DNA of 62,890 bases, counting the filler, from Octopus bimaculoides (taxonomy: Eukaryota): the NCBI RefSeq assembly GCF_001194135.2. It is 5 parts of 5 records of this genome, joined end to end, with 100 filler letters (N's around TTAATTAATTAA, not from the genome) between each part and the next. Parts side by side here need not be neighbours in the genome. Positions count along the whole stretch, not along the records: positions 33,738 to 59,141 come from NC_068990.1; 4 more parts are not named here. One strand, written 5' to 3'. Both the position numbers and the translations under genes were made by a program. Under the pieces are notes generated by a model. The model saw only the letters and a list, made by a program, of their open reading frames with translations. It did not search any database and was not told the DNA's origin. Shown one piece after another: positions 33,738-61,783 of the stretch. Each line of letters opens with the position of its first letter. Within the stretch, counting starts at the first letter, position 1.

Positions 33738-33850
33738 ATATATATACCGGAGTAAGCACATGAAATGTGCAACAAGGTGGAAAAAAGAGTACTCAAATAC
33801 CAGAGGTAGAGTAATATGCTTTATTTAAAAGCAGCAGAAAAATAACAAAA

Positions 33851-35374: not shown

Positions 35375-35790
35375 TTTTTTTTATTGTTTTACTTGCTTTA
35401 GTCATTTGACTGTGGCCATGCTGGAGCACTGCCTTTAGTCGAGCAAATCAACCCCGGGACTTATTCTTTGTAAGCCTAGTATTTATTCTATTGGTCTCTT
35501 TTGCGAAAACAAGTTACAGGGACGTACACACGCGAATATTGGTCGTCAAGCAATGATGGCGGAACAAACACAAACACATACACACACACGACAGGCTTCT
35601 TTCAGTTTCCGTCTACCAAATTCACTCACAAGGTTTCAGTCAGCCCGAGGCTATAGTAGAAGACACTTGCCCAAGGTGCCACAGAGTGGAACTGAATCCA
35701 GAACGATGTGGTTGGGAAGCAAGCTTCTTAACANNNNNNNNNNCGATGTGGTTGGGAAGCAAGCTTCTTAACACATACTCATGCCTACGC
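35375..35790 (-). mobile_element. OR/OK-type SINE, full length, antisense
   Basis: tttcagtttccgtctacc...agaagacacttgcccaaggtgcc...ggttgggaagcaagc. Confidence 0.85.
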
Positions 35791-35894
35791 CTATAATTCT
35801 TTTTTTTTCTGGTAGGTATATGTCAATTGCATTGACCCCAGTACACAACTGGTACTTAATTTGTCGACCCCGAAAGGATGAAAGGCAAAGTCAA

Positions 35895-36011
35895 CCTTGG
35901 CGTTCTGGGTTCAGTTCCACTGTTGTGGCACCTTGGGCAAGTGTCTTCTACTATAGCCTCGGGCTGGCCTTGTGAGTGAATACGGTAGATGGAAACTGAA
36001 AGAAGCCTGTC

Positions 36012-36082
<71 letters not shown>

Positions 36083-36325
36083 CGTGTGTGTGCGTGTGTG
36101 TGTGTGTTTGGGTGTCTGTTTTTGTCCCCTGAACCTTCGCTTGACAACCGATGCTGGTGTGTTTATGCCCCCATAAGCTAGCGGTTCGGCAAAAGAGACT
36201 GATGGAATAAGTACTAAGCTTGAAAGGAATATGTCCTGGGGCCGATTTGCTCAACTAAAGGTGGTGCTCAAGCATGGCCGCAGTCAAATGACTGAAACAA
36301 TTAAAAGAATAAAAGAATAAAGAAT
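35895..36325 (+). mobile_element. OR/OK-type SINE
   Basis: gggttcagttccactg..gcaccttgggcaagtgtcttc...gcatggccgcagtcaaatgactgaaac; tail (AAAGAAT)n. Confidence 0.88.
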
Positions 36326-38302: not shown

Positions 38303-38795
38303 ATGCCAAAAAAGGTCACAGAAAATGAGAAAGCAACCATACTATGGGATATACCAATACACACAGATAGAGAAATTAAGGCCAATAGGTCAGATATAGT
38401 TGTCAGAGATCACGAAGAAAAAAAATGCTTTTTAATTGATGTATCAATACCAACAGATGACAATGATTCTCTAGAAGAAATGGAGAGACTTTCAAAATAC
38501 AAAGACCTGGAAATAGAGGTAACTCGAATGTGGAATCTAAAAGCAGAAACAATACCTATCAACTAGGTACGATAAAAAAAATATTCAAACAAATACATAA
38601 CAAAAACACCAGGACTTACAAATATATATAACATACAGAACATAGCACTACTGGGCACTGCACACATCCTACGCAAAACACTTCCAATACAGTAACCATA
38701 AGAGCATCACAGCAAACCACAGCACATACCCAAGGCACACAGAGCTGTGCTCGGTAGTGAAGTGAAAGCACCTGATAAAAATAAGACTACTGAAT
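38303..38795 (+). pseudogene. R4/Dong-like family A, complete RLE domain + 3' UTR
   Basis: ILWDIPIHTDREIKANRSDIVVRDHEEKKCFLIDVSIP...RLSKYKDLEIE; tail runs into (AAT)n. Confidence 0.92.
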
Positions 38796-38814
38796 AATAG
38801 TAGTTATAATAATA

Positions 38815-38847
<33 letters not shown>

Positions 38848-38867
38848 ATAATGATAATAATAATAAC

Positions 38868-39080
38868 TTTTACTATAGGCACAAGGCCTGAAATTTTGGG
38901 GAGGGAACTAGTTGATTACATTCATCCCAGTGTTTCACTGGCATTTATTTTATCGACCCTGAAAAGATGAGAGGCAAAGTTGACCTCGGTGGAATTTGAA
39001 CTCACAACGTAGTAATGGGCAAAATACTGCTAAGCATTTCGTCCAGTGCTTGAACAATTCTGCTACTTCACCACCTTAAA
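38868..39080 (-). mobile_element. MetaSINE-like copy
   Basis: tactataggcacaaggcctgaaatt...tatcgaccctgaaaagatgagaggcaaagttgacctcgg. Confidence 0.82.
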
Positions 39081-39119
39081 TAATAATAATGATGATGATG
39101 ATAATAGTAATAGTAATAG

Positions 39120-39283
39120 GTGCAGGAGTGGCTGTGTGGTAAGTAGCTTGCTTACCAACCACATGGTTCCGGGTTCAGTCCCACTGCGTGGCATCTTGGG
39201 CAAATGTCTTCTACTATAGCCTCGGGCCGACCAATGCCTTGTGAGTGGATTTGGTAGACGGAAACTGAAAGAAGCTCATTGTA

Positions 39284-39334
<51 letters not shown>

Positions 39335-39400
39335 TTGTGTGTCTGTGTTTGTCCCCCCAACACCGCTTGACAACCGATGGTGGTGTGTTTACATCCCCGT
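39120..39400 (+). mobile_element. OR/OK-type SINE, 3'-truncated
   Basis: gtgcaggagtggctgtgtggtaagtagcttgcttacc... Confidence 0.88.
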
Positions 39401-40061
39401 AACAGAGTAATAGTAATAATAATAATGATGATGATGATGATAATAGTAATAATTATGATGATGATAACAACAACAACATTACAGTACATGAACACTTGAT
39501 AATACTGAATTTATGTAAGACCAGAAGACATCATTAAGGTTCCTATATAAACGAAAAATATATAAGTGGATACAAAGAATCTCATTCATTCCTCTTAGAT
39601 TCCTTCCAAAATAGAAACGGGTCATGTTTATGTATAAAAAAAACAACAACAAAATAAACCCCACATAAGTAAAGAAAAGTTTAAAAAAAAAAAAGAAATT
39701 TTAAACAGTTATTCATTGACCATTTCACAATCCCACTTCTGTACGGATGCACAATATGGTCCCCAAGAAAGTGGCTTGGGTTAAATAAATATTATTTCTT
39801 TCATGAAAGCTTGTCTTATGATATAAGCTTCCATCACACGTTATTGAGACAGGGGCCCGGTAGTGGTGGTGGTGGTTGTGGTGGCGGTGGTGATGGGGGA
39901 TATGGTAAAAGTTAAACATTGTTTTAACGGAATTTATGGCATATCTATAAATGACAGAATACCGTGTTTGTAAACATTAAAGCAAATTTCAAGCAATTAG
40001 GGAGATTATTAGTAGCTATCTCATGCTGAGAGTGTGTATATGTGTATGCCTGTGTGTGTGT

Positions 40062-40114
<53 letters not shown>

Positions 40115-40285
40115 NNNNNNNNNNATATATATATATATATGTGTGTGTGTGCGTGTGTGTGTGTGTGTGTGTATATGTGATTCAGTATGTATATACAGGT
40201 GTGTATTTTTGTGTGTGTATCATATACATTATCCCATGATAGTCAAACTATACTGAAAATTAGGGGATAAATTTTGCACACAGTA

Positions 40286-40330
<45 letters not shown>

Positions 40331-40334
40331 TGAT

Positions 40335-40505
40335 AGGCATAGGAGTGGTTGTGTTGTTATGAAGCTTGCTTCCCAACTATATAGTTTCAGGTTCAGTCCC
40401 AATGCGTAGTACTTTGGGCATATGTTTCCTACCAGAGCTCCAAGTTGACCAAAGCCTTCCGAGCAGACTTGATGGACAGAAACTGAAAGAAGCCTGTCGT
40501 ATACA
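40335..40505 (+). mobile_element. OR/OK-type SINE 5' half
   Basis: taggagtggttgtg..gaagcttgcttcccaac...gaaactgaaagaagcctgtcg. Confidence 0.8.
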
Positions 40506-40528
40506 TATATAGGTGAACACTGAGCTGC

Positions 40529-40577
40529 CATAACTGATGAGGCAACGGAAATTGTTGAAACTGATGTCAGTCTTAAG
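40529..40577 (+). ncRNA. degenerate type I hammerhead-like motif
   Basis: cataa CTGATGA ggcaac-ggaa-attgtt GAAA ctgatgtcag TC ttaag. Confidence 0.5.
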
Positions 40578-40984
40578 AATTCTTGGTCGGCATTTTTCGG
40601 ACAATTATGTCCCTGCTAGTGTATATGATTTCATCCATGTGCATTAACTACAACACGAGAGTATTTTAGCTCTTATTTCTAGCAATGTAGGTGTTTTTTT
40701 AACACCCGAGTCACATTTAATGACAATTATAATTCTTCTTTTTGGTGAAGCATTGCAAACTGCTGTTTAATTTTATATATATATGTGTGTGTAACTGAAT
40801 GTTTACAGGCTGATGTTTGTCGACTGTTTATCCTCTCCATTTTCTTATTTGCCTTATAAATCCTGGGTAAATTTCTGTTTTACCCCCACTCATACCTAGT
40901 GTTCAATTGCAATACTGCCCTGCAATAGTTAGCACTTTGATATAAATATGTAGGTATACATCCAGTAGTGAACCATATTTGATG

Positions 40985-41440
40985 ACCTGTGCCAGTGGAG
41001 CACTAACAGCACCGTCTGAGCGTGATCATTGCTAGAGCAGCTGTCTGGCTTTCATGCTAGTGGCCAGTATATAGCACCATTTGAGTGTGATCGTTACTAG
41101 TGTTGCCATACTGGCACTTGTGCTGGTGGTACATTAGAAAATCATTCGGGCAAGGTCGAGCGAGGTCGTTACCAGTGCCGCTGGACTGGCTCCTGTGCAG
41201 GTGGCACATACAAAACACCATTTTTGAGCGTGGCCATTGCCAGTACCGCCTGACTGGCCTTCGTGCCGGTGGCGCATAAAAGCACCCACTACACTCTCAG
41301 AATGGTTGGCGATAGGAAGGGCATCCAGCTGTAGAAACTCTGCCAAATCAGATTGGAGCCTGGTGCAGCCATCCGGTTCACCAGTCCTCAGTCAAATCGT
41401 CCAACCCATGCTAGCATGGAAAACAGACGTTAAATGACGA

Positions 41441-42115: not shown

Positions 42116-42839
42116 TTAACCCTTTTGTTACCATATTTCTGTTGAGATGCTCTGTGTTTCTTTCAATTAATTTTAAATATTACAAAGAATTTAGTAAAAT
42201 AACTTAGTTATCATTAAGCTAGTGTTAGGAACATAAATTATGACTAAAGTGTGGTGGAATATTTTAATTCAGAACTTATGAAAACAAGACATTTATACTA
42301 CAGATCCAGAGGTGATTTCAACCAGGTTGGTATCGAAAGGGTTAAAAATATCATGGTGACTTTAACTTTTTTGTTACCATATTTCTCTTGAGATGCTCTG
42401 TATTTCTTTCAATTTATTTTAAATATAACAAAGAATTTAATAAAATAACTTAGTTATCATTAAGCTAGTGTTAGGAACATAAATTGTGACTAAGGTTTGG
42501 TGGAATATTTTAATTCAGAACTTTTGAAAACAAGACATTTATACTACAGATCCAGAGGTGGTTTCAGCCGGTTTGGAATCGAAAGAGTTTAAGATATCAT
42601 GGTGACTTTAACCCTTTTGTTATCATATTTCTCTTGAGATGCTCTGTGTTTCTTTCAATTAATTTTAAATATTTTAAAAGAATTTAGTAAAATAACTTAG
42701 TTATCATTCAGCTAGTGTTAGGAACATAAATTTGTAACTAAGGTTTGGTGGAATATTTTAATTCAAAACTTATGAAAACAAGACATTTGTACAAAAGAGC
42801 CAGAGTTGGTTTCAGCTGGGTTGGTATCAAAAGGGTTAA
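42116..42839. mobile_element. head-to-tail trimer of piggyBac-like MITE family 2 with conserved spacers
   Basis: units 42120-42341, 42366-42587, 42612-42835; junctions TTAA-aaatatcatggtgact-TTAA and TTAA-gatatcatggtgact-TTAA; outer TTAA at both ends. Confidence 0.92.
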
Positions 42840-43629
42840 ACATATAAGTGTGTGTGTGTATGCATGTGTGTGTGTGTGTGTGTGTGGCATAAACAATGGG
42901 CTTTAGATATTTCTTTATTTGTGCATTTCTGACTTACAGCTGTTTCTGATATATTTTTAGGTGCATTCATTGTTCTGATTGCTCAATGTGTGTATATTGA
43001 TCAACTGAAAAATTAAATGGCCTGAACAAATGCCATCATTGTCAGAGCCCACGCACACACACACACACACACACAGTGGAGCATCACTGACCCAGTCATT
43101 GATGTTCAATAAAGAACTTTTGATAGCTCATAATAATTATGATGATGATGACGATGATAATGATGATGGTGATGATGCATTATTATTATTATGAAATAAA
43201 AACATAAATAGTAAATCTAACAATGGTGTGTGTGTTTTTAATAGTGATATACTGACTCTGCCACTTGTTTGAGACTTCTCACACACACACACACACACAC
43301 ACACACTTTCACAACTAATCACTCGCCAAACAACTGCTGCGTCTTATGAATGCTTCCCCCCCCCTTTCTGTTGTTTGGTTTCTGCTTTACTCACATTTCG
43401 ATTTTTGTTTTCTCCCAATATTTACAATGGAATTAAATGTTGAAAGAAAAAAAGGAGATGAAAAACACACCATGTCTGTTTGATTAAACACAGATCATTT
43501 CTAGCAGTCCATTTGCATGATAAACAAAAACAAACACACAAAAAAAGAAAACAAAAACAAAAAAAAAAAAGGAAAACAAACGTTGTTGGTTTTGAAAGCA
43601 AAATAAACCTTATGTGAGAGTGAACCACA

Positions 43630-53470: not shown

Positions 53471-54006
53471 NCAATACCAGCAGATGACAACGTTTCTCTA
53501 AAAGAAATGGAAAAACTTTCAAAATACAAAGACCTGGAAATAGAGATAACTCGAATGTGGAATCTAAAAACAGAAACAATTCCTATCATAGTAGGTGCCT
53601 TAGGTATAATAAAAAAATATTCAGACAAATACATAACAAAAACACCAGGACTTACAAATATATATAACATACAGAAAATTGCACTACTGGGTACTGCACA
53701 CATTCTACGCAAAACACTTTCAATACAGTAAACATAAGAGCATCACAGCAAACCACAGCACATACCCAAGGCGCACAGAGCTGCGCTCGGTAGTGAAGTG
53801 AAAGCACGTTATAAAAATAAGACTAATGAATAATAATAATAATAACACAGAAAATTGCACTACTGGGTACTGCACACATTCTATGCAAAACACTTTCAAT
53901 ACAGTAAACATAAGAGCACCACAGCAAACCACAGCACATACCCAAGGCGCACAGAGCTGCGCTCGGTAGTGAAGTGAAAGCACGTTATAAAAATAAAACT
54001 ACTGAA
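53471..54006 (+). mobile_element. two stacked family A R4/Dong-like 3' ends (53471-53830, 53847-54006)
   Basis: EKLSKYKDLEIEITRMWNLKTETIPIIVGALG...KTLSIQ*, then (AAT)n and a shorter, slightly different copy. Confidence 0.88.
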
Positions 54007-54200
54007 TAATAATAATAGTAAATAATGATAACGGTTTCTTTATTAACCATGAGGGTTTACATGAAGGAAAACATTATGGACAGCACAGGACAGAATAAAA
54101 AATATGTGTGTGTATGTATGTGTGTGAGTGCATGTATGTGTGTGAGAGTTTTACTTGTAAACGAGACTAATAAAGTTTTAAAAAAAGAGATCAACAATAT

Positions 54201-54659: not shown

Positions 54660-55000
54660 AAATGTGGCCATGCTGGAGCACTGCCTTGAATTTTTAGTTG
54701 AACAAATCAAACCCAGTAATTTTTTAAATTTTTTTCGTTTTTAAGCCTCGTTCTTATTCTATCAGTCTCTTTTGCTGGACTGTTAAGTTATGGGAGTGCA
54801 AACAAGCCAACACTGGTTGTGAAGCAGTGTAGCAGGACACACACACACACACACACAGGATGGGTTTCTTTCAGTTTCCGTCTACCAGATCCACTCACAA
54901 GGCTTTGGTCAGCCCAAATCTATAGTAAAAGGCACTTGACCAAGGTACCATGCAGTGAGATTGAACTTGTTACCAAGCTTCTTACCACACAGCCTCACTC
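54660..55000 (-). mobile_element. OR/OK-type SINE, antisense
   Basis: tgtggccatgctggagcactgcc...ttcagtttccgtctaccagatccactcacaaggc. Confidence 0.8.
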
Positions 55001-55124
55001 ATGTATTTACTGTATTTTGTTTCTTTTACAGTTACCAATATGGCTTACTGAAATATTTGCAATGTTTGTCAACTGGTGAAACATGGGATGCTTTTTGTCA
55101 CATCTTGTATAATAACCACCTAGA

Positions 55125-55290: not shown

Positions 55291-55426
55291 TTATTATTAT
55301 TATTGTTCAGTAGTTTTATTTTTATAATGTGCTTTCACTTCACTACCGAGCGCAGCTCTGTGCGCCTTGGGTATGTGCTGTGGTTTGCTGTGGTGCTCTT
55401 ATGTTTACTGTATTGAAAGTGTTTTG
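55291..55426 (-). mobile_element. R4/Dong-like family A 3' tip inserted in that (ATT)n
   Basis: gttcagtagttttatttttata..gtgctttcacttcactaccgagcgc. Confidence 0.85.
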
Positions 55427-55892
55427 NNNNNNNNNNNNNNNNNNNNNNNNNNNNNNNNNNNNNNNNNNNNNNNNNNNNNNNNNNNNNNNNNNNNNNNNNN
55501 NNNNNNNNNNNNNNNNNNNNNNNNNNNNNNNNNNNNNNNNNNNNNNNNNNNNNNNNNNNNNNNNNNNNNNNNNNNNNNNNNNNNNNNNNNNNNNNNNNNN
55601 NNNNNNNNNNNNNNNNNNNNNNNNNNNNNNNNNNNNNNNNNNNNNNNNNNNNNNNNNNNNNNNNNNNNNNNNNNNNNNNNNNNNNNNNNNNNNNNNNNNN
55701 NNNNNNNNNNNNNNNNNNNNNNNNNNNNNNNNNNNNNNNNNNNNNNNNNNNNNNNNNNNNNNNNNNNNNNNNNNNNNNNNNNNNNNNNNNNNNNNNNNNN
55801 NNNNNNNNNNNNNNNNNNNNNNNNNNNNNNNNNNNNNNNNNNNNNNNNNNNNNNNNNNNNNNNNNNNNNNNNNNNNNNNNNNNNNNNNNATT

Positions 55893-56053: not shown

Positions 56054-56445
56054 AAGCCAAACATAGTGTTGAGAAAGAAAGCAAACTATGCTGGATCATA
56101 GATATAGCATGCCCAGCTGACAACAAGGTATGCGATAAGGAAGAAAGAAAAGTCGACAGATATGACAGGTTAGCTTGGGAAGTTAAGCAGTTGTGGTCCA
56201 TGGAAAAGGTGTTGGTTGTACCAATAATTGTCGGAGCCCTGGAAACAGTGAGTAAAAATCTTGAGATGCACGTGGAACAAATAAGGGCTGCAATAAGGGT
56301 GGAGCACTTGCAGAAAACAGCACTGCTTGGAACTGCTCAAATACTCAGGAAAGTGCTTGAAAAATGAGAGGTGTTACCTTAGTTCACTGGTAGAGAACAG
56401 CTGACACTGTAGTACATCTCCAGTGTTAGAAGCTGTGCAAAGGCA
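56054..56445 (+). pseudogene. R4/Dong-like RLE domain, family H
   Basis: LCWIIDIACPADNKVCDKEERKVDRYDRLAWEVKQLWSMEKVLVVPIIVGALE...LQKTALLGTAQILRKVLEK*; (AAT)n on both sides. Confidence 0.88.
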
Positions 56446-56834
56446 ATAATAATAATAATAATAAAAAGAAGAAGAAGAAGAAGACGAAGAAGAAGAAGAC
56501 GAAGTACGAGTGGAAGTACAGCAGTTGATTTAATCAACTGCACCCCTTTTCTTTCCAATAAACTGTGTCCTTGGGGGACAACTTAAGAAATCATTACAAC
56601 TACTACTAATATTACTCCTACTACTACTGTGTATTTCCAATAATTGCCATTGCATCACCAGGTGTGTCTCTATTTTCTGGAAGGAGGTTGGTGCATTGAG
56701 AAAAAGAGGGCAAAGTCGTTTAGTGTGTTAGGTTTTAATTAAATTTGATGTGTCGTGGGGTTGGTTTTTACCATTTCTGGTTTAATTCGTTTTGCTTATT
56801 GTATAGAATATGTGTGGTTGTGTGTGAGATGTGC

Positions 56835-57350
56835 TGGAAGAGGAACTTGGCTCATGACCATAAGGTTGTGAGTTCGAATCCCGGTGATGCGTTGTGTCCT
56901 TGATATTTCATGTTGCTCCAGTCCCCTCGGCTGACAAAAGTGATGTGTACTTGTAATTCAGCCGGGTTGGTATCGAAAGGGTTAAAAATATCATGGTGAC
57001 TTTAACCCTTTTGTTTCCATATTTCTGTTGAGGTGCTCTGTGGTTCTTTCAATTAATTTTAAATGTAACAAAGAATTTAGTAAAATAATTTAGTTATCAT
57101 TCAGCTTGTGTTAGGAACATAAATTATGACTAAAGTTTGGTGGAATATTTTAATTCAGAACTTTTAAAAAGCAGACATTTGTATTCAGAGCCAGAGCCGG
57201 TTTCAGGCAGGTTGGTATGAAAAGGGTTAAGGGTACACATCCATGAAGTGCTCAACCACTTGCATGTTAATTTCATGAGTAGGGTGTTCCATTAATTGGG
57301 TCAATTGGAACCCTCGTTATCATAACCGATGGAGTGCCAGTTATAGTGTC
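56835..57350 (+). mobile_element. tRNA-SINE interrupted by piggyBac-like MITE family 2 (remnant + spacer + full unit 57006-57226)
   Basis: SINE 5' part ends gtacttgtaattca; resumes TTAA|gggtacac as in intact copy 61663-61674. Confidence 0.85.
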
Positions 57351-57404
57351 GAGTGGTGACAGTGTTCACAATGTGTTGTGTGTGCATGCACACATTTTTT
57401 TGTG

Positions 57405-57620
57405 TTTCCCTGTGTTGACATAGCATGATAGTTACAAACGAACATCGACATCACACAAGAGGAGCCCTCCATTTCCAATCCTCCATGTAAACATGTCAGG
57501 CCACAGAGAAACATTGCTTTATTTGGAAACAGCTGAAAGTTGGCAACAAGAAAGGCATCCAGACATAGAAAATCTCTGCTTCAACAAATTCCACCCAAAT
57601 CATATGACCACAGGAAAGTG
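57405..57620 (+). mobile_element. SINE 3' module
   Basis: ttgacatagcatgatagtt...gttggcaacaagaaaggcatccag; similar to 7305-7400. Confidence 0.55.
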
Positions 57621-58555
57621 ATAGCAGTAGTAGTAGTAGTAGTAATGGTGGTAGTCATGGTGGTGGTGGTGGTAGTAATTGTAATAGTAGTAGTAATTGG
57701 GATCTATTTCAAAACGGGGGGGGGGGATAGTGGTAGTAATTGTAGTAGTAGTAGTGGNNNNNNNNNNNNNNNNNNNNNNNNNNNNNNNNNNNNNNNNNNN
57801 NNNNNNNNNNNNNNNNNNNNNNNNNNNNNNNNNNNNNNNNNNNNNNNNNNNNNNNNNNNNNNNNNNNNNNNNNNNNNNNNNNNNNNNNNNNNNNNNNNNN
57901 NNNNNNNNNNNNNNNNNNNNNNNNNNNNNNNNNNNNNNNNNNNNNNNNNNNNNNNNNNNNNNNNNNNNNNNNNNNNNNNNNNNNNNNNNNNNNNNNNNNN
58001 NNNNNNNNNNNNNNNNNNNNNNNNNNNNNNNNNNNNNNNNNNNNNNNNNNNNNNNNNNNNNNNNNNNNNNNNNNNNNNNNNNNNNNNNNNNNNNNNNNNN
58101 NNNNNNNNNNNNNNNNNNNNNNNNNNNNNNNNNNNNNNTGGTGGTGGTGGTGGTGGTGGTGGGATTATGAGGCAAAGATGTTATTGATAGAAGTACAAAA
58201 AGACTGAAATACAGTGGTATGGGGTGGGGGTGGGGACAGAGAGAGAAAGAGAAAGGGAGGAAGAGAGAGAAGGGAGGGAGAGAGAGAAGGGAGGGAGGGT
58301 GAGAGGGCTGAAGAAGGTGGGATTAGGGGGGAAAATGTGTTTTTGAAAGGAGTACAAAAAAACTGGGAAACACAATAGTATGGGGGGAGAGAGGGGGAGA
58401 AACAATGTGTGAGTGAGAGAGAAAGAGAGGGAGAGAGAGACAATGTGTGAGTGAGAGAGAAAGAGAGGGAGAAAGATAGGGCGTAAGTGAAAGAGAATGA
58501 GAGGGGGTGACAGGAATGGAGAAACAGAGAGTGTGTGAGTAAAAAGAGGACATTA

Positions 58556-61400: not shown

Positions 61401-61783
61401 GGCGCAATGGCCCAGTGGTTAGGGCAGCGGACTTGCGGTCATAGGATCACGGTTTCGATTCCCAGACCAGGCGTTGTGAGTGTTTATTGAGCGAAAACAC
61501 CTAAAGCTCCACGAGGCTCCGGCAGGAGATGGTGGCGAACCCTGCTGTACTCTTTCACCACAACTTTCTCTCACTCTTACTTCCTGTTTCTGTTGTGCCT
61601 GTAATTCAAAGGGTCAGCCTTGTCACACTCTATGTCACGCTGAATATCCCCTGAGAACTACGTTAAGGGTACACGTGTCTGTGGAGTGCCCAGCCACTTA
61701 CACGTTAATTTCACGAGCAGGCTGTTCCGTTGATCGGATCAACTGGAACCCTCGGCGTTGTAAGCGACGGAGTGCCAACAACA
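61401..61783 (+). mobile_element. full-length tRNA-derived SINE, third family
   Basis: A box tggcccagtgg, B box ggtttcgattcc, (CAA) tail; antisense copy at 17652-18024. Confidence 0.9.

Follow-up and report, generated by a model that had tools for sequence, protein, structure and literature searches.

Possible composite movement of a tandem piggyBac-type MITE segment into a putative SINE in Octopus bimaculoides

How did the tail of one MITE unit, a 16-bp spacer and a complete second unit come to stand in a row at about 57 kb, when the same arrangement occurs inside a three-unit array at about 42 kb, and did the segment arrive there as one block? The two loci lie in a window of 62,890 nucleotides of Octopus bimaculoides DNA (assembly GCF_001194135.2, five parts joined by filler letters), in which positions 33,738 to 59,141 form a 25-kb piece of NC_068990.1. 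A preliminary description of the window had proposed that the MITE multimer moved as a unit into a TTAA belonging to a SINE, and that the left part of the insert was removed by a deletion.

Anatomy of the insert and of the three-unit array

We read the insert base by base and aligned it to the 42-kb repeat; all of the features given below lie on the plus strand. The left flank (56830-56956, with an approximate 5′ boundary) may be the 5′ portion of a CORE-like SINE derived from a tRNA, and closes with ...gtgatgtgtacttgtaa. Next comes the remnant of a MITE unit, its final 25 bp (TTCAGCCGGGTTGGTATCGAAAGGG, 56957-56981), of which 23 agree with the end of A1 in the array. The inter-unit junction (56982-57005) consists of a TTAA at 56982-56985, the 16-bp spacer AAATATCATGGTGACT at 56986-57001 and a second TTAA at 57002-57005. 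It leads into a full MITE unit of 221 bp, named S2 (57006-57226), which runs CCCTTTTGTTTCC...GGTATGAAAAGGG, that is, from CCCTTTT to AAAAGGG. On the right, the insert ends in the exact unit terminus GGG and then a TTAA (57227-57230), which is either a target-site copy or the target's own TTAA. The right flank, gggtacacatcc... (gggtacac), is a putative 3′ part of the same SINE and extends over 57231-57345 with a putative 3′ boundary. In this respect the preliminary description, which gave the insert as a unit tail of about 25 bp, the same 16-bp spacer and a full unit, was correct in both anatomy and coordinates.

The two ends of the insert are not alike. The right TTAA alone survives, and the left junction is located 25 bp from a unit's end. 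The TTCA at 56957-56960, which forms the first four bases of the MITE remnant, is a proposed microhomology and can be assigned to either partner. The unit-to-unit junction between 56968 and 57019 is itself an inverted repeat, in which the right and left unit ends face each other across 14 nt with 84% complementarity; such a hairpin-prone junction could favour slippage or aberrant end pairing.

The reference array occupies 42116-42839 and was reported by Tandem Repeats Finder with a period of 246, 3.0 copies and 90% matches. It opens with a TTAA (42116-42119) and unit A1 (42120-42341), followed by a TTAA (42342-42345), a spacer (42346-42361) and a TTAA (42362-42365). Unit A2, both termini of which are mutated, covers 42366-42587 and is followed by TTTA (42588-42591), the spacer AGATATCATGGTGACT (42592-42607) and a TTAA (42608-42611); unit A3 (42612-42835) and a last TTAA (42836-42839) complete the array. 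The outer unit termini are intact, and a TTAA stands at both of them. In the middle unit, CCC has become CTT, GGG has become GAG and the next TTAA has become TTTA (42366-42591).

The sequence just right of the array, ACATATAAGTGTGTGT (42840-42855), passes into (TG)n and shares 10 of its 16 positions with the spacer (p about 0.004, the frequency among all 16-mers being 0.0037). Among the approximately 231 non-spacer 16-mers that follow a TTAA in the 25-kb piece, it is the only one with at least 10 spacer matches; this likeness was a post hoc observation. In addition, the array left flank and the spacer both end in TTTAA ahead of CCC, a possible 5-bp microhomology. The likeness fits an array born by tandem duplication of a block made of TTAA, unit, TTAA and 16 bp of flank, and suggests that the 42-kb array grew by local tandem duplication of a unit with its flank, or that it once reached further. 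Given this resemblance, transposition is not required for arrays to form here.

The insert and the array share their interior and differ in their surroundings. A 36-bp junction probe has three matches in the whole window, with none expected by chance: one at 56976 and the other two at the internal junctions of the 42-kb array. The spacer of the insert is identical to the A1-A2 spacer at all 16 positions, and the inserted segment follows the array sequence without interruption and in register. The two loci have unrelated flanks, as the preliminary description had held. An internal spacer identical to that of the array within unrelated flanks is what composite transposition predicts.

At 57 kb the spacer is foreign to the local sequence, as the right flank reads GGGTACAC..., and yet unit DNA stands on both sides of it. 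We infer that more than one unit, together with the spacer, was copied between loci and came as a single piece from an array located elsewhere. The same difference between the spacer and the local flank led us to reject amplification in situ of a monomer at the 57-kb locus.

The repeat unit, its age and its surroundings

The repeat unit is best classed as a non-autonomous piggyBac-type DNA transposon (MITE), because it has TTAA flanks, CCC/GGG termini and short inverted ends without an open reading frame (ORF). The units are 221-224 bp long, with stop codons in all six frames. TTAA flanks A1, A3 and S2 on both sides, and the right side of A2 reads TTTA. The unit ends, CCCTTTTGTT(A/T)CCA and TGGTAT(C/G)(G/A)AAAGGG, form 18-nt arms including the TTAA that are complementary at 15 of 18 positions (83%); the end sequence of the unit is CCCTTTTGTTACC. 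Within each 246-bp module, TTAA occurs about six times.

The repeat annotation of O. vulgaris lists six piggyBac families as recently active (PMC13282606). In the 25-kb piece, the ten larger ORFs scanned had no Pfam match, so that no transposase was seen among them, and an exact look-up of ten local ORFs in a collection of 15 billion proteins recorded none of them. MITE copies are present at two loci of the 25 kb, 14 kb apart and on the same strand, and absent from 72 kb of other Octopus DNA, namely the rhodopsin loci of O. vulgaris, O. bimaculoides and O. sinensis (24 kb each). A junction 30-mer and a junction 19-mer had no match in viral contigs. The 19-mer had five matches in prokaryote genomes, about the number estimated by chance for a collection of that size, and an 18-mer of the MITE retrieved 72 loci from metagenomes, all of them chance matches of 20-35 bp.

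The array units A1 to A3 are 89.7-92.4% identical in pairwise comparison, S2 is 86-90% identical to them, and the overall divergence among units is 8-14%. Private changes number 21 in S2, the most divergent of the units, and 3-9 in the array units. The preliminary description had pointed to a tree of units from both loci as a check. The informative sites for such a tree split 4:4:2, and a donor-recipient relation is not visible. We likewise discarded a resolved unit tree and a clean signature of unequal crossover, given this split and an apparent mosaic structure of A2 that needs about five switches. Since S2 differs by 10-14% from every unit of the neighbouring array, the 42-kb array was not a recent donor.

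As a yardstick of age, we used non-coding DNA at the Octopus rhodopsin locus, found with a query of rhodopsin and tropomyosin (the tropomyosin isoform was not recorded). At this locus, O. bimaculoides is roughly 73-89% identical per aligned block to O. vulgaris or O. sinensis, and the latter two are about 95% identical to each other. The divergence among units is of the same order as that of non-coding DNA between species, so the events are old, approximately as old as those species splits. Orthologous empty sites may exist in related Octopus species.

The DNA on both sides of the insert was compared with known SINEs. The left flank contains GTTCGAATCCCGG (56872-56884), similar to a tRNA B box, and its alignment with a MIR consensus, over the head and CORE, is moderate (z = 4.2); against the same consensus, the right flank gives z of about 1, nothing significant. 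The Octopus SINEs OR1 and OR2 have been described as CORE-SINEs. No tRNA was called in the flanks by ARAGORN or Rfam, and a six-frame query with the chimeric SINE peptide had no match at E <= 1. Pattern searches with three mismatches and blastn with word size 7 found no second copy of either flank in the 25-kb piece. The preliminary description had regarded the right flank as part of a SINE that occurs intact elsewhere in the window, at 61663 and about 17767, both outside the 25-kb piece; in the piece and in the 72 kb from the three Octopus rhodopsin loci, no SINE copy was found, including the intact read-through ...gtaattca...TTAAgggtacac. A candidate target duplication of the SINE, TGTG(G)TTGTGTGTG, present as TGTGGTTGTGTGTG at about 56812 and as TGTGTTGTGTGTG at about 57371-57373, has p = 0.08 when compared with window pairs drawn at random from the piece. 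A SINE split by the MITE insert is plausible, although the evidence beyond the motif and alignment of the left flank is weak.

We also considered, and set aside, an origin of the spacer from the adjacent SINE-like sequence. The spacer matches the reverse complement of 56893-56908 (tgtgtCCTTGATATTT) at 12 of 16 positions, which is marginal (p about 0.05-0.2 after scanning). Only four non-spacer 16-mers in the piece match the spacer that well, and one of them lies 78 bp from the insert.

Other repeats surround the locus. Directly 3′ of the right flank, at 57460-57700, a repeat tail (...ggcatccagacatagaaaatc...) ends in (GTA)n and recalls the 3′ end of a SINE or LINE, and the insert is therefore surrounded by nested repeats. 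The C-terminal ORF of a retrotransposon (ILWD...ANRSDIV...LIDVS.P.D...KY.DLEIE...W) is represented by three fragments, at 38303-38566, 53507-53731 and 56101-56367. They had no Pfam match, and are 50-81% identical to unnamed ORFs on ENA contigs and to proteins of cnidarians, insects and a shrimp that are labelled 'uncharacterized protein / reverse transcriptase zinc-binding'. A LINE-tail protein query retrieved only short ENA contigs (76-81% identity) together with cnidarian and other proteins. A retroelement tail is followed closely by two tandem copies of a 176-bp unit, 97% identical (53671-54021); the unit recurs inverted about 1.4 kb downstream (55329-55430), with the ORF start MLSLHYRAQLCAPWVCAVVCCGALMFTVLKVF on both strands. 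A different, abundant SINE-like repeat, usually found beside (TG)n or (TA)n, occurs at 35553-36312, 38773-39403, 40229-40604 and 54819-55079; copies of the first two, 82-94% identical, are present in the rhodopsin loci of O. vulgaris and O. sinensis. Together with a cephalopod-like ENA contig, these matches mark the window as octopod DNA. Finally, Tandem Repeats Finder reported a 68-bp tandem duplication at 41158-41286 (1.9 copies, 77% matches, consensus ...CCGCCGGACTGGCTCCTGTGCAGGTGGCACATAAAAACACC).

Routes to the 57-kb locus

The reading that we favour, with a probability of roughly 0.45, is that a multimer was mobilised by transposase, inserted at a TTAA and later shortened by a deletion on its left side. 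A TTAA-integrating MITE of about 222 bp would have become a head-to-tail array with its units separated by TTAA, 16 bp and TTAA. The 16-bp spacer would be a fossil of the DNA beside the original MITE insertion, captured either when a unit and its flank were duplicated in tandem or when two insertions hit TTAAs separated by 16 bp. Next, a piggyBac-like transposase supplied from another locus would have brought together the left end of one unit and the right end of a unit further downstream. The composite thus excised, at least two units with their spacer, would have entered a TTAA near 57.2 kb, in an apparent tRNA/CORE-type SINE. A later deletion, possibly joined through TTCA, would have taken the left target copy, the left unit or units except for the last 25 bp, and probably some of the SINE.

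The canonical right boundary, an exact unit end followed by TTAA, favours such a transposase-mediated insertion of a multimer, and the TTAA at both outer termini of the 42-kb array is counted on the same side. The presence of two same-strand loci 14 kb apart, with none in the 72 kb of other Octopus DNA, fits local hopping. On the other side, the left junction falls within a unit, at a place that a transposase would leave uncut, and the resemblance of the array right flank to the spacer makes growth by local duplication possible, which also counts against the transposase account. Composite transposition should leave both outer termini and a duplicated target; at the 57-kb locus, the left end and the left TTAA are absent, so there is no pair of target-site copies to mark an integration. 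The left end may have been lost secondarily, and such a deletion would be unremarkable if the events are old. The earlier claim that a dimer with its spacer transposed independently is thereby divided: the shared spacer and the unrelated flanks bear out the import of more than one unit, whereas, with the left end and a TTAA pair missing, the action of a transposase is no more than the favoured reading.

The main rival, less probable but serious, does without a transposase. A double-strand break in the SINE would have been repaired by a synthesis-dependent or polymerase-theta-type process, for which a MITE array, perhaps the one 14 kb upstream, served as template over about 270 bp; the copy would have been joined by microhomologies of 4 bp at its left (TTCA) and right (TTAA) ends. 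One event explains both junctions here, whereas the transposase account needs two. Repair also accommodates a left junction within a unit, away from any transposase cut site, and it agrees with an insert of contiguous, in-register array sequence, a nearby donor array on the same strand and the six TTAAs in every 246 bp. Its difficulty lies at the right junction, which coincides with a unit terminus: with TTAA at this frequency, a join restricted to TTAA microhomology would fall on that exact boundary about one time in six, and a join without the restriction much less often. A chance of one in six is not negligible, however, and so also tells against the exact boundary as a sign of a transposase. 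It further requires that both TTCA and TTAA pre-existed in the putative target, and the divergence of S2 from all of the nearby array units, which does not fit a recent copy from that array, tells against the most convenient donor.

Two separate arrivals would dispense with the multimer. First in place would have been a fragment with a unit tail, TTAA, the spacer and TTAA, for example the remnant of an older array or insertion, and S2 would have come later as a monomer into the TTAA at the right edge of the spacer. Every boundary of S2 is a TTAA, S2 taken alone looks like a normal monomer insertion, and piggyBac-type elements target TTAA. Nested or adjacent insertions are common in A-T-rich MITE DNA. 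Transposon dimers often arise from repeated insertion at preferred sites (McGurk and Barbash 2018, PMC5932611). Chance, however, would have to recreate the spacer, orientation and register of an arrangement seen twice at 42 kb, and the spacer-bearing fragment would still have been imported; we therefore regard this sequence of events as improbable.

A larger duplication or ectopic recombination could instead have copied the end of another array together with its own flank, in which case the supposed right half of the SINE would not be a target at all. This would agree with a right flank that matches no SINE or repeat in the piece and with the p value of 0.08 for the target duplication, but the left flank resembles the head of a tRNA/CORE SINE and stops abruptly, the preliminary description cites intact SINE copies elsewhere, and we hold out little prospect for this explanation. 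An assembly artefact, by which a longer array was collapsed or mis-joined in the short-read draft assembly, is very improbable: the locus does lie in a 1.9-kb contig between N gaps (55427-55889 and 57758-58138) and tandem 246-bp repeats are prone to collapse, but the 4-bp TTCA overlap is far too short for a graph mis-join and no N crosses either junction.

Extending the favoured transposase reading, we tentatively suggest, with somewhat less assurance than for the locus itself, that the short tandem piggyBac-MITE arrays in octopus are mobile composites, whose outermost ends carry blocks of units and a fossil spacer to new TTAAs.

Comparison with known tandem transposons

Composite transposition, or macrotransposition, through the outer ends of linked elements is classical in bacterial IS composites and dimers and in the Ac/Ds macrotransposons of maize. 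In these systems, the transposase uses the outer ends of two direct repeats and carries the intervening DNA with them, which is the logic of the mechanism favoured for octopus. The likeness is one of mechanism logic alone, as the 57-kb insert retains one outer end and no transposase was identified. We know of no report of composite transposition for piggyBac-type MITEs.

If multi-unit MITE blocks transpose, tandem arrays, the seeds of satellites, would have a simple route to new chromosomal sites. Proto-satellite arrays would then be seeded across the genome by cut-and-paste, beyond local amplification, and the octopus locus would offer a natural case of composite transposition by a piggyBac-type element, in a cephalopod whose genome abounds in SINEs and DNA transposons. 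If confirmed, movement of whole arrays would extend the known kind modestly; its present basis is a single degraded locus, and it belongs to ordinary selfish-DNA biology and leaves the general picture unchanged.

The closest known arrays are the CMITEs of the coral Acropora, which are piggyBac-type MITEs with TTAA and CC[C/T]T termini, whose full-size units are arrayed head to tail (Wang, Zhang, Meyer and Matz 2010, PLoS One, PMC2872659). One of these arrays has gaps between its units, with conservation of units and gap sequence alike (PMC2872659). The coral and the octopus are alike in their tandem piggyBac-type MITE units with a conserved gap. The coral arrays were ascribed to replication slippage (PMC2872659), and the slippage proposed for the arrays with gaps is an origin of the same kind as the duplication that we propose for the 42-kb array. 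Compared with the coral, where no array segment was shown at a second locus (PMC2872659), the octopus has the module of unit plus gap at two loci with differing flanks, and in a cephalopod host; there is no evidence in octopus of a conserved internal region common to families.

In Drosophila, tandem dimers of DNA transposons arise by double insertion and are expanded by unequal exchange (McGurk and Barbash 2018, Genome Res, PMC5932611). Their junctions keep target-site sequence, some with extra intervening sequence, and the dimers seed larger arrays (PMC5932611). The Drosophila junction is normally a single target duplication, whereas the octopus junction reads TTAA, 16 bp, TTAA, which points to two neighbouring TTAAs or to duplication of a unit with its flank. 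Movement of the dimer itself, which is proposed here for the octopus array, is not the topic of the Drosophila paper (PMC5932611). Among molluscs, MITEs that contain tandem repeats are known from bivalves; Donax trunculus carries DTC84, which, at least as outlined in PMC3879986, comprises short dispersed MITE-related tandem arrays whose repeats are internal modules between MITE ends. DTC84, so described, and the octopus array are both MITE-related tandem arrays of a mollusc, but the octopus repeat is a complete MITE with its own ends. The octopus case is a cephalopod addition to the known tandem piggyBac-MITE arrays, for which arrays with a conserved gap, as well as transposon dimers, are already published.
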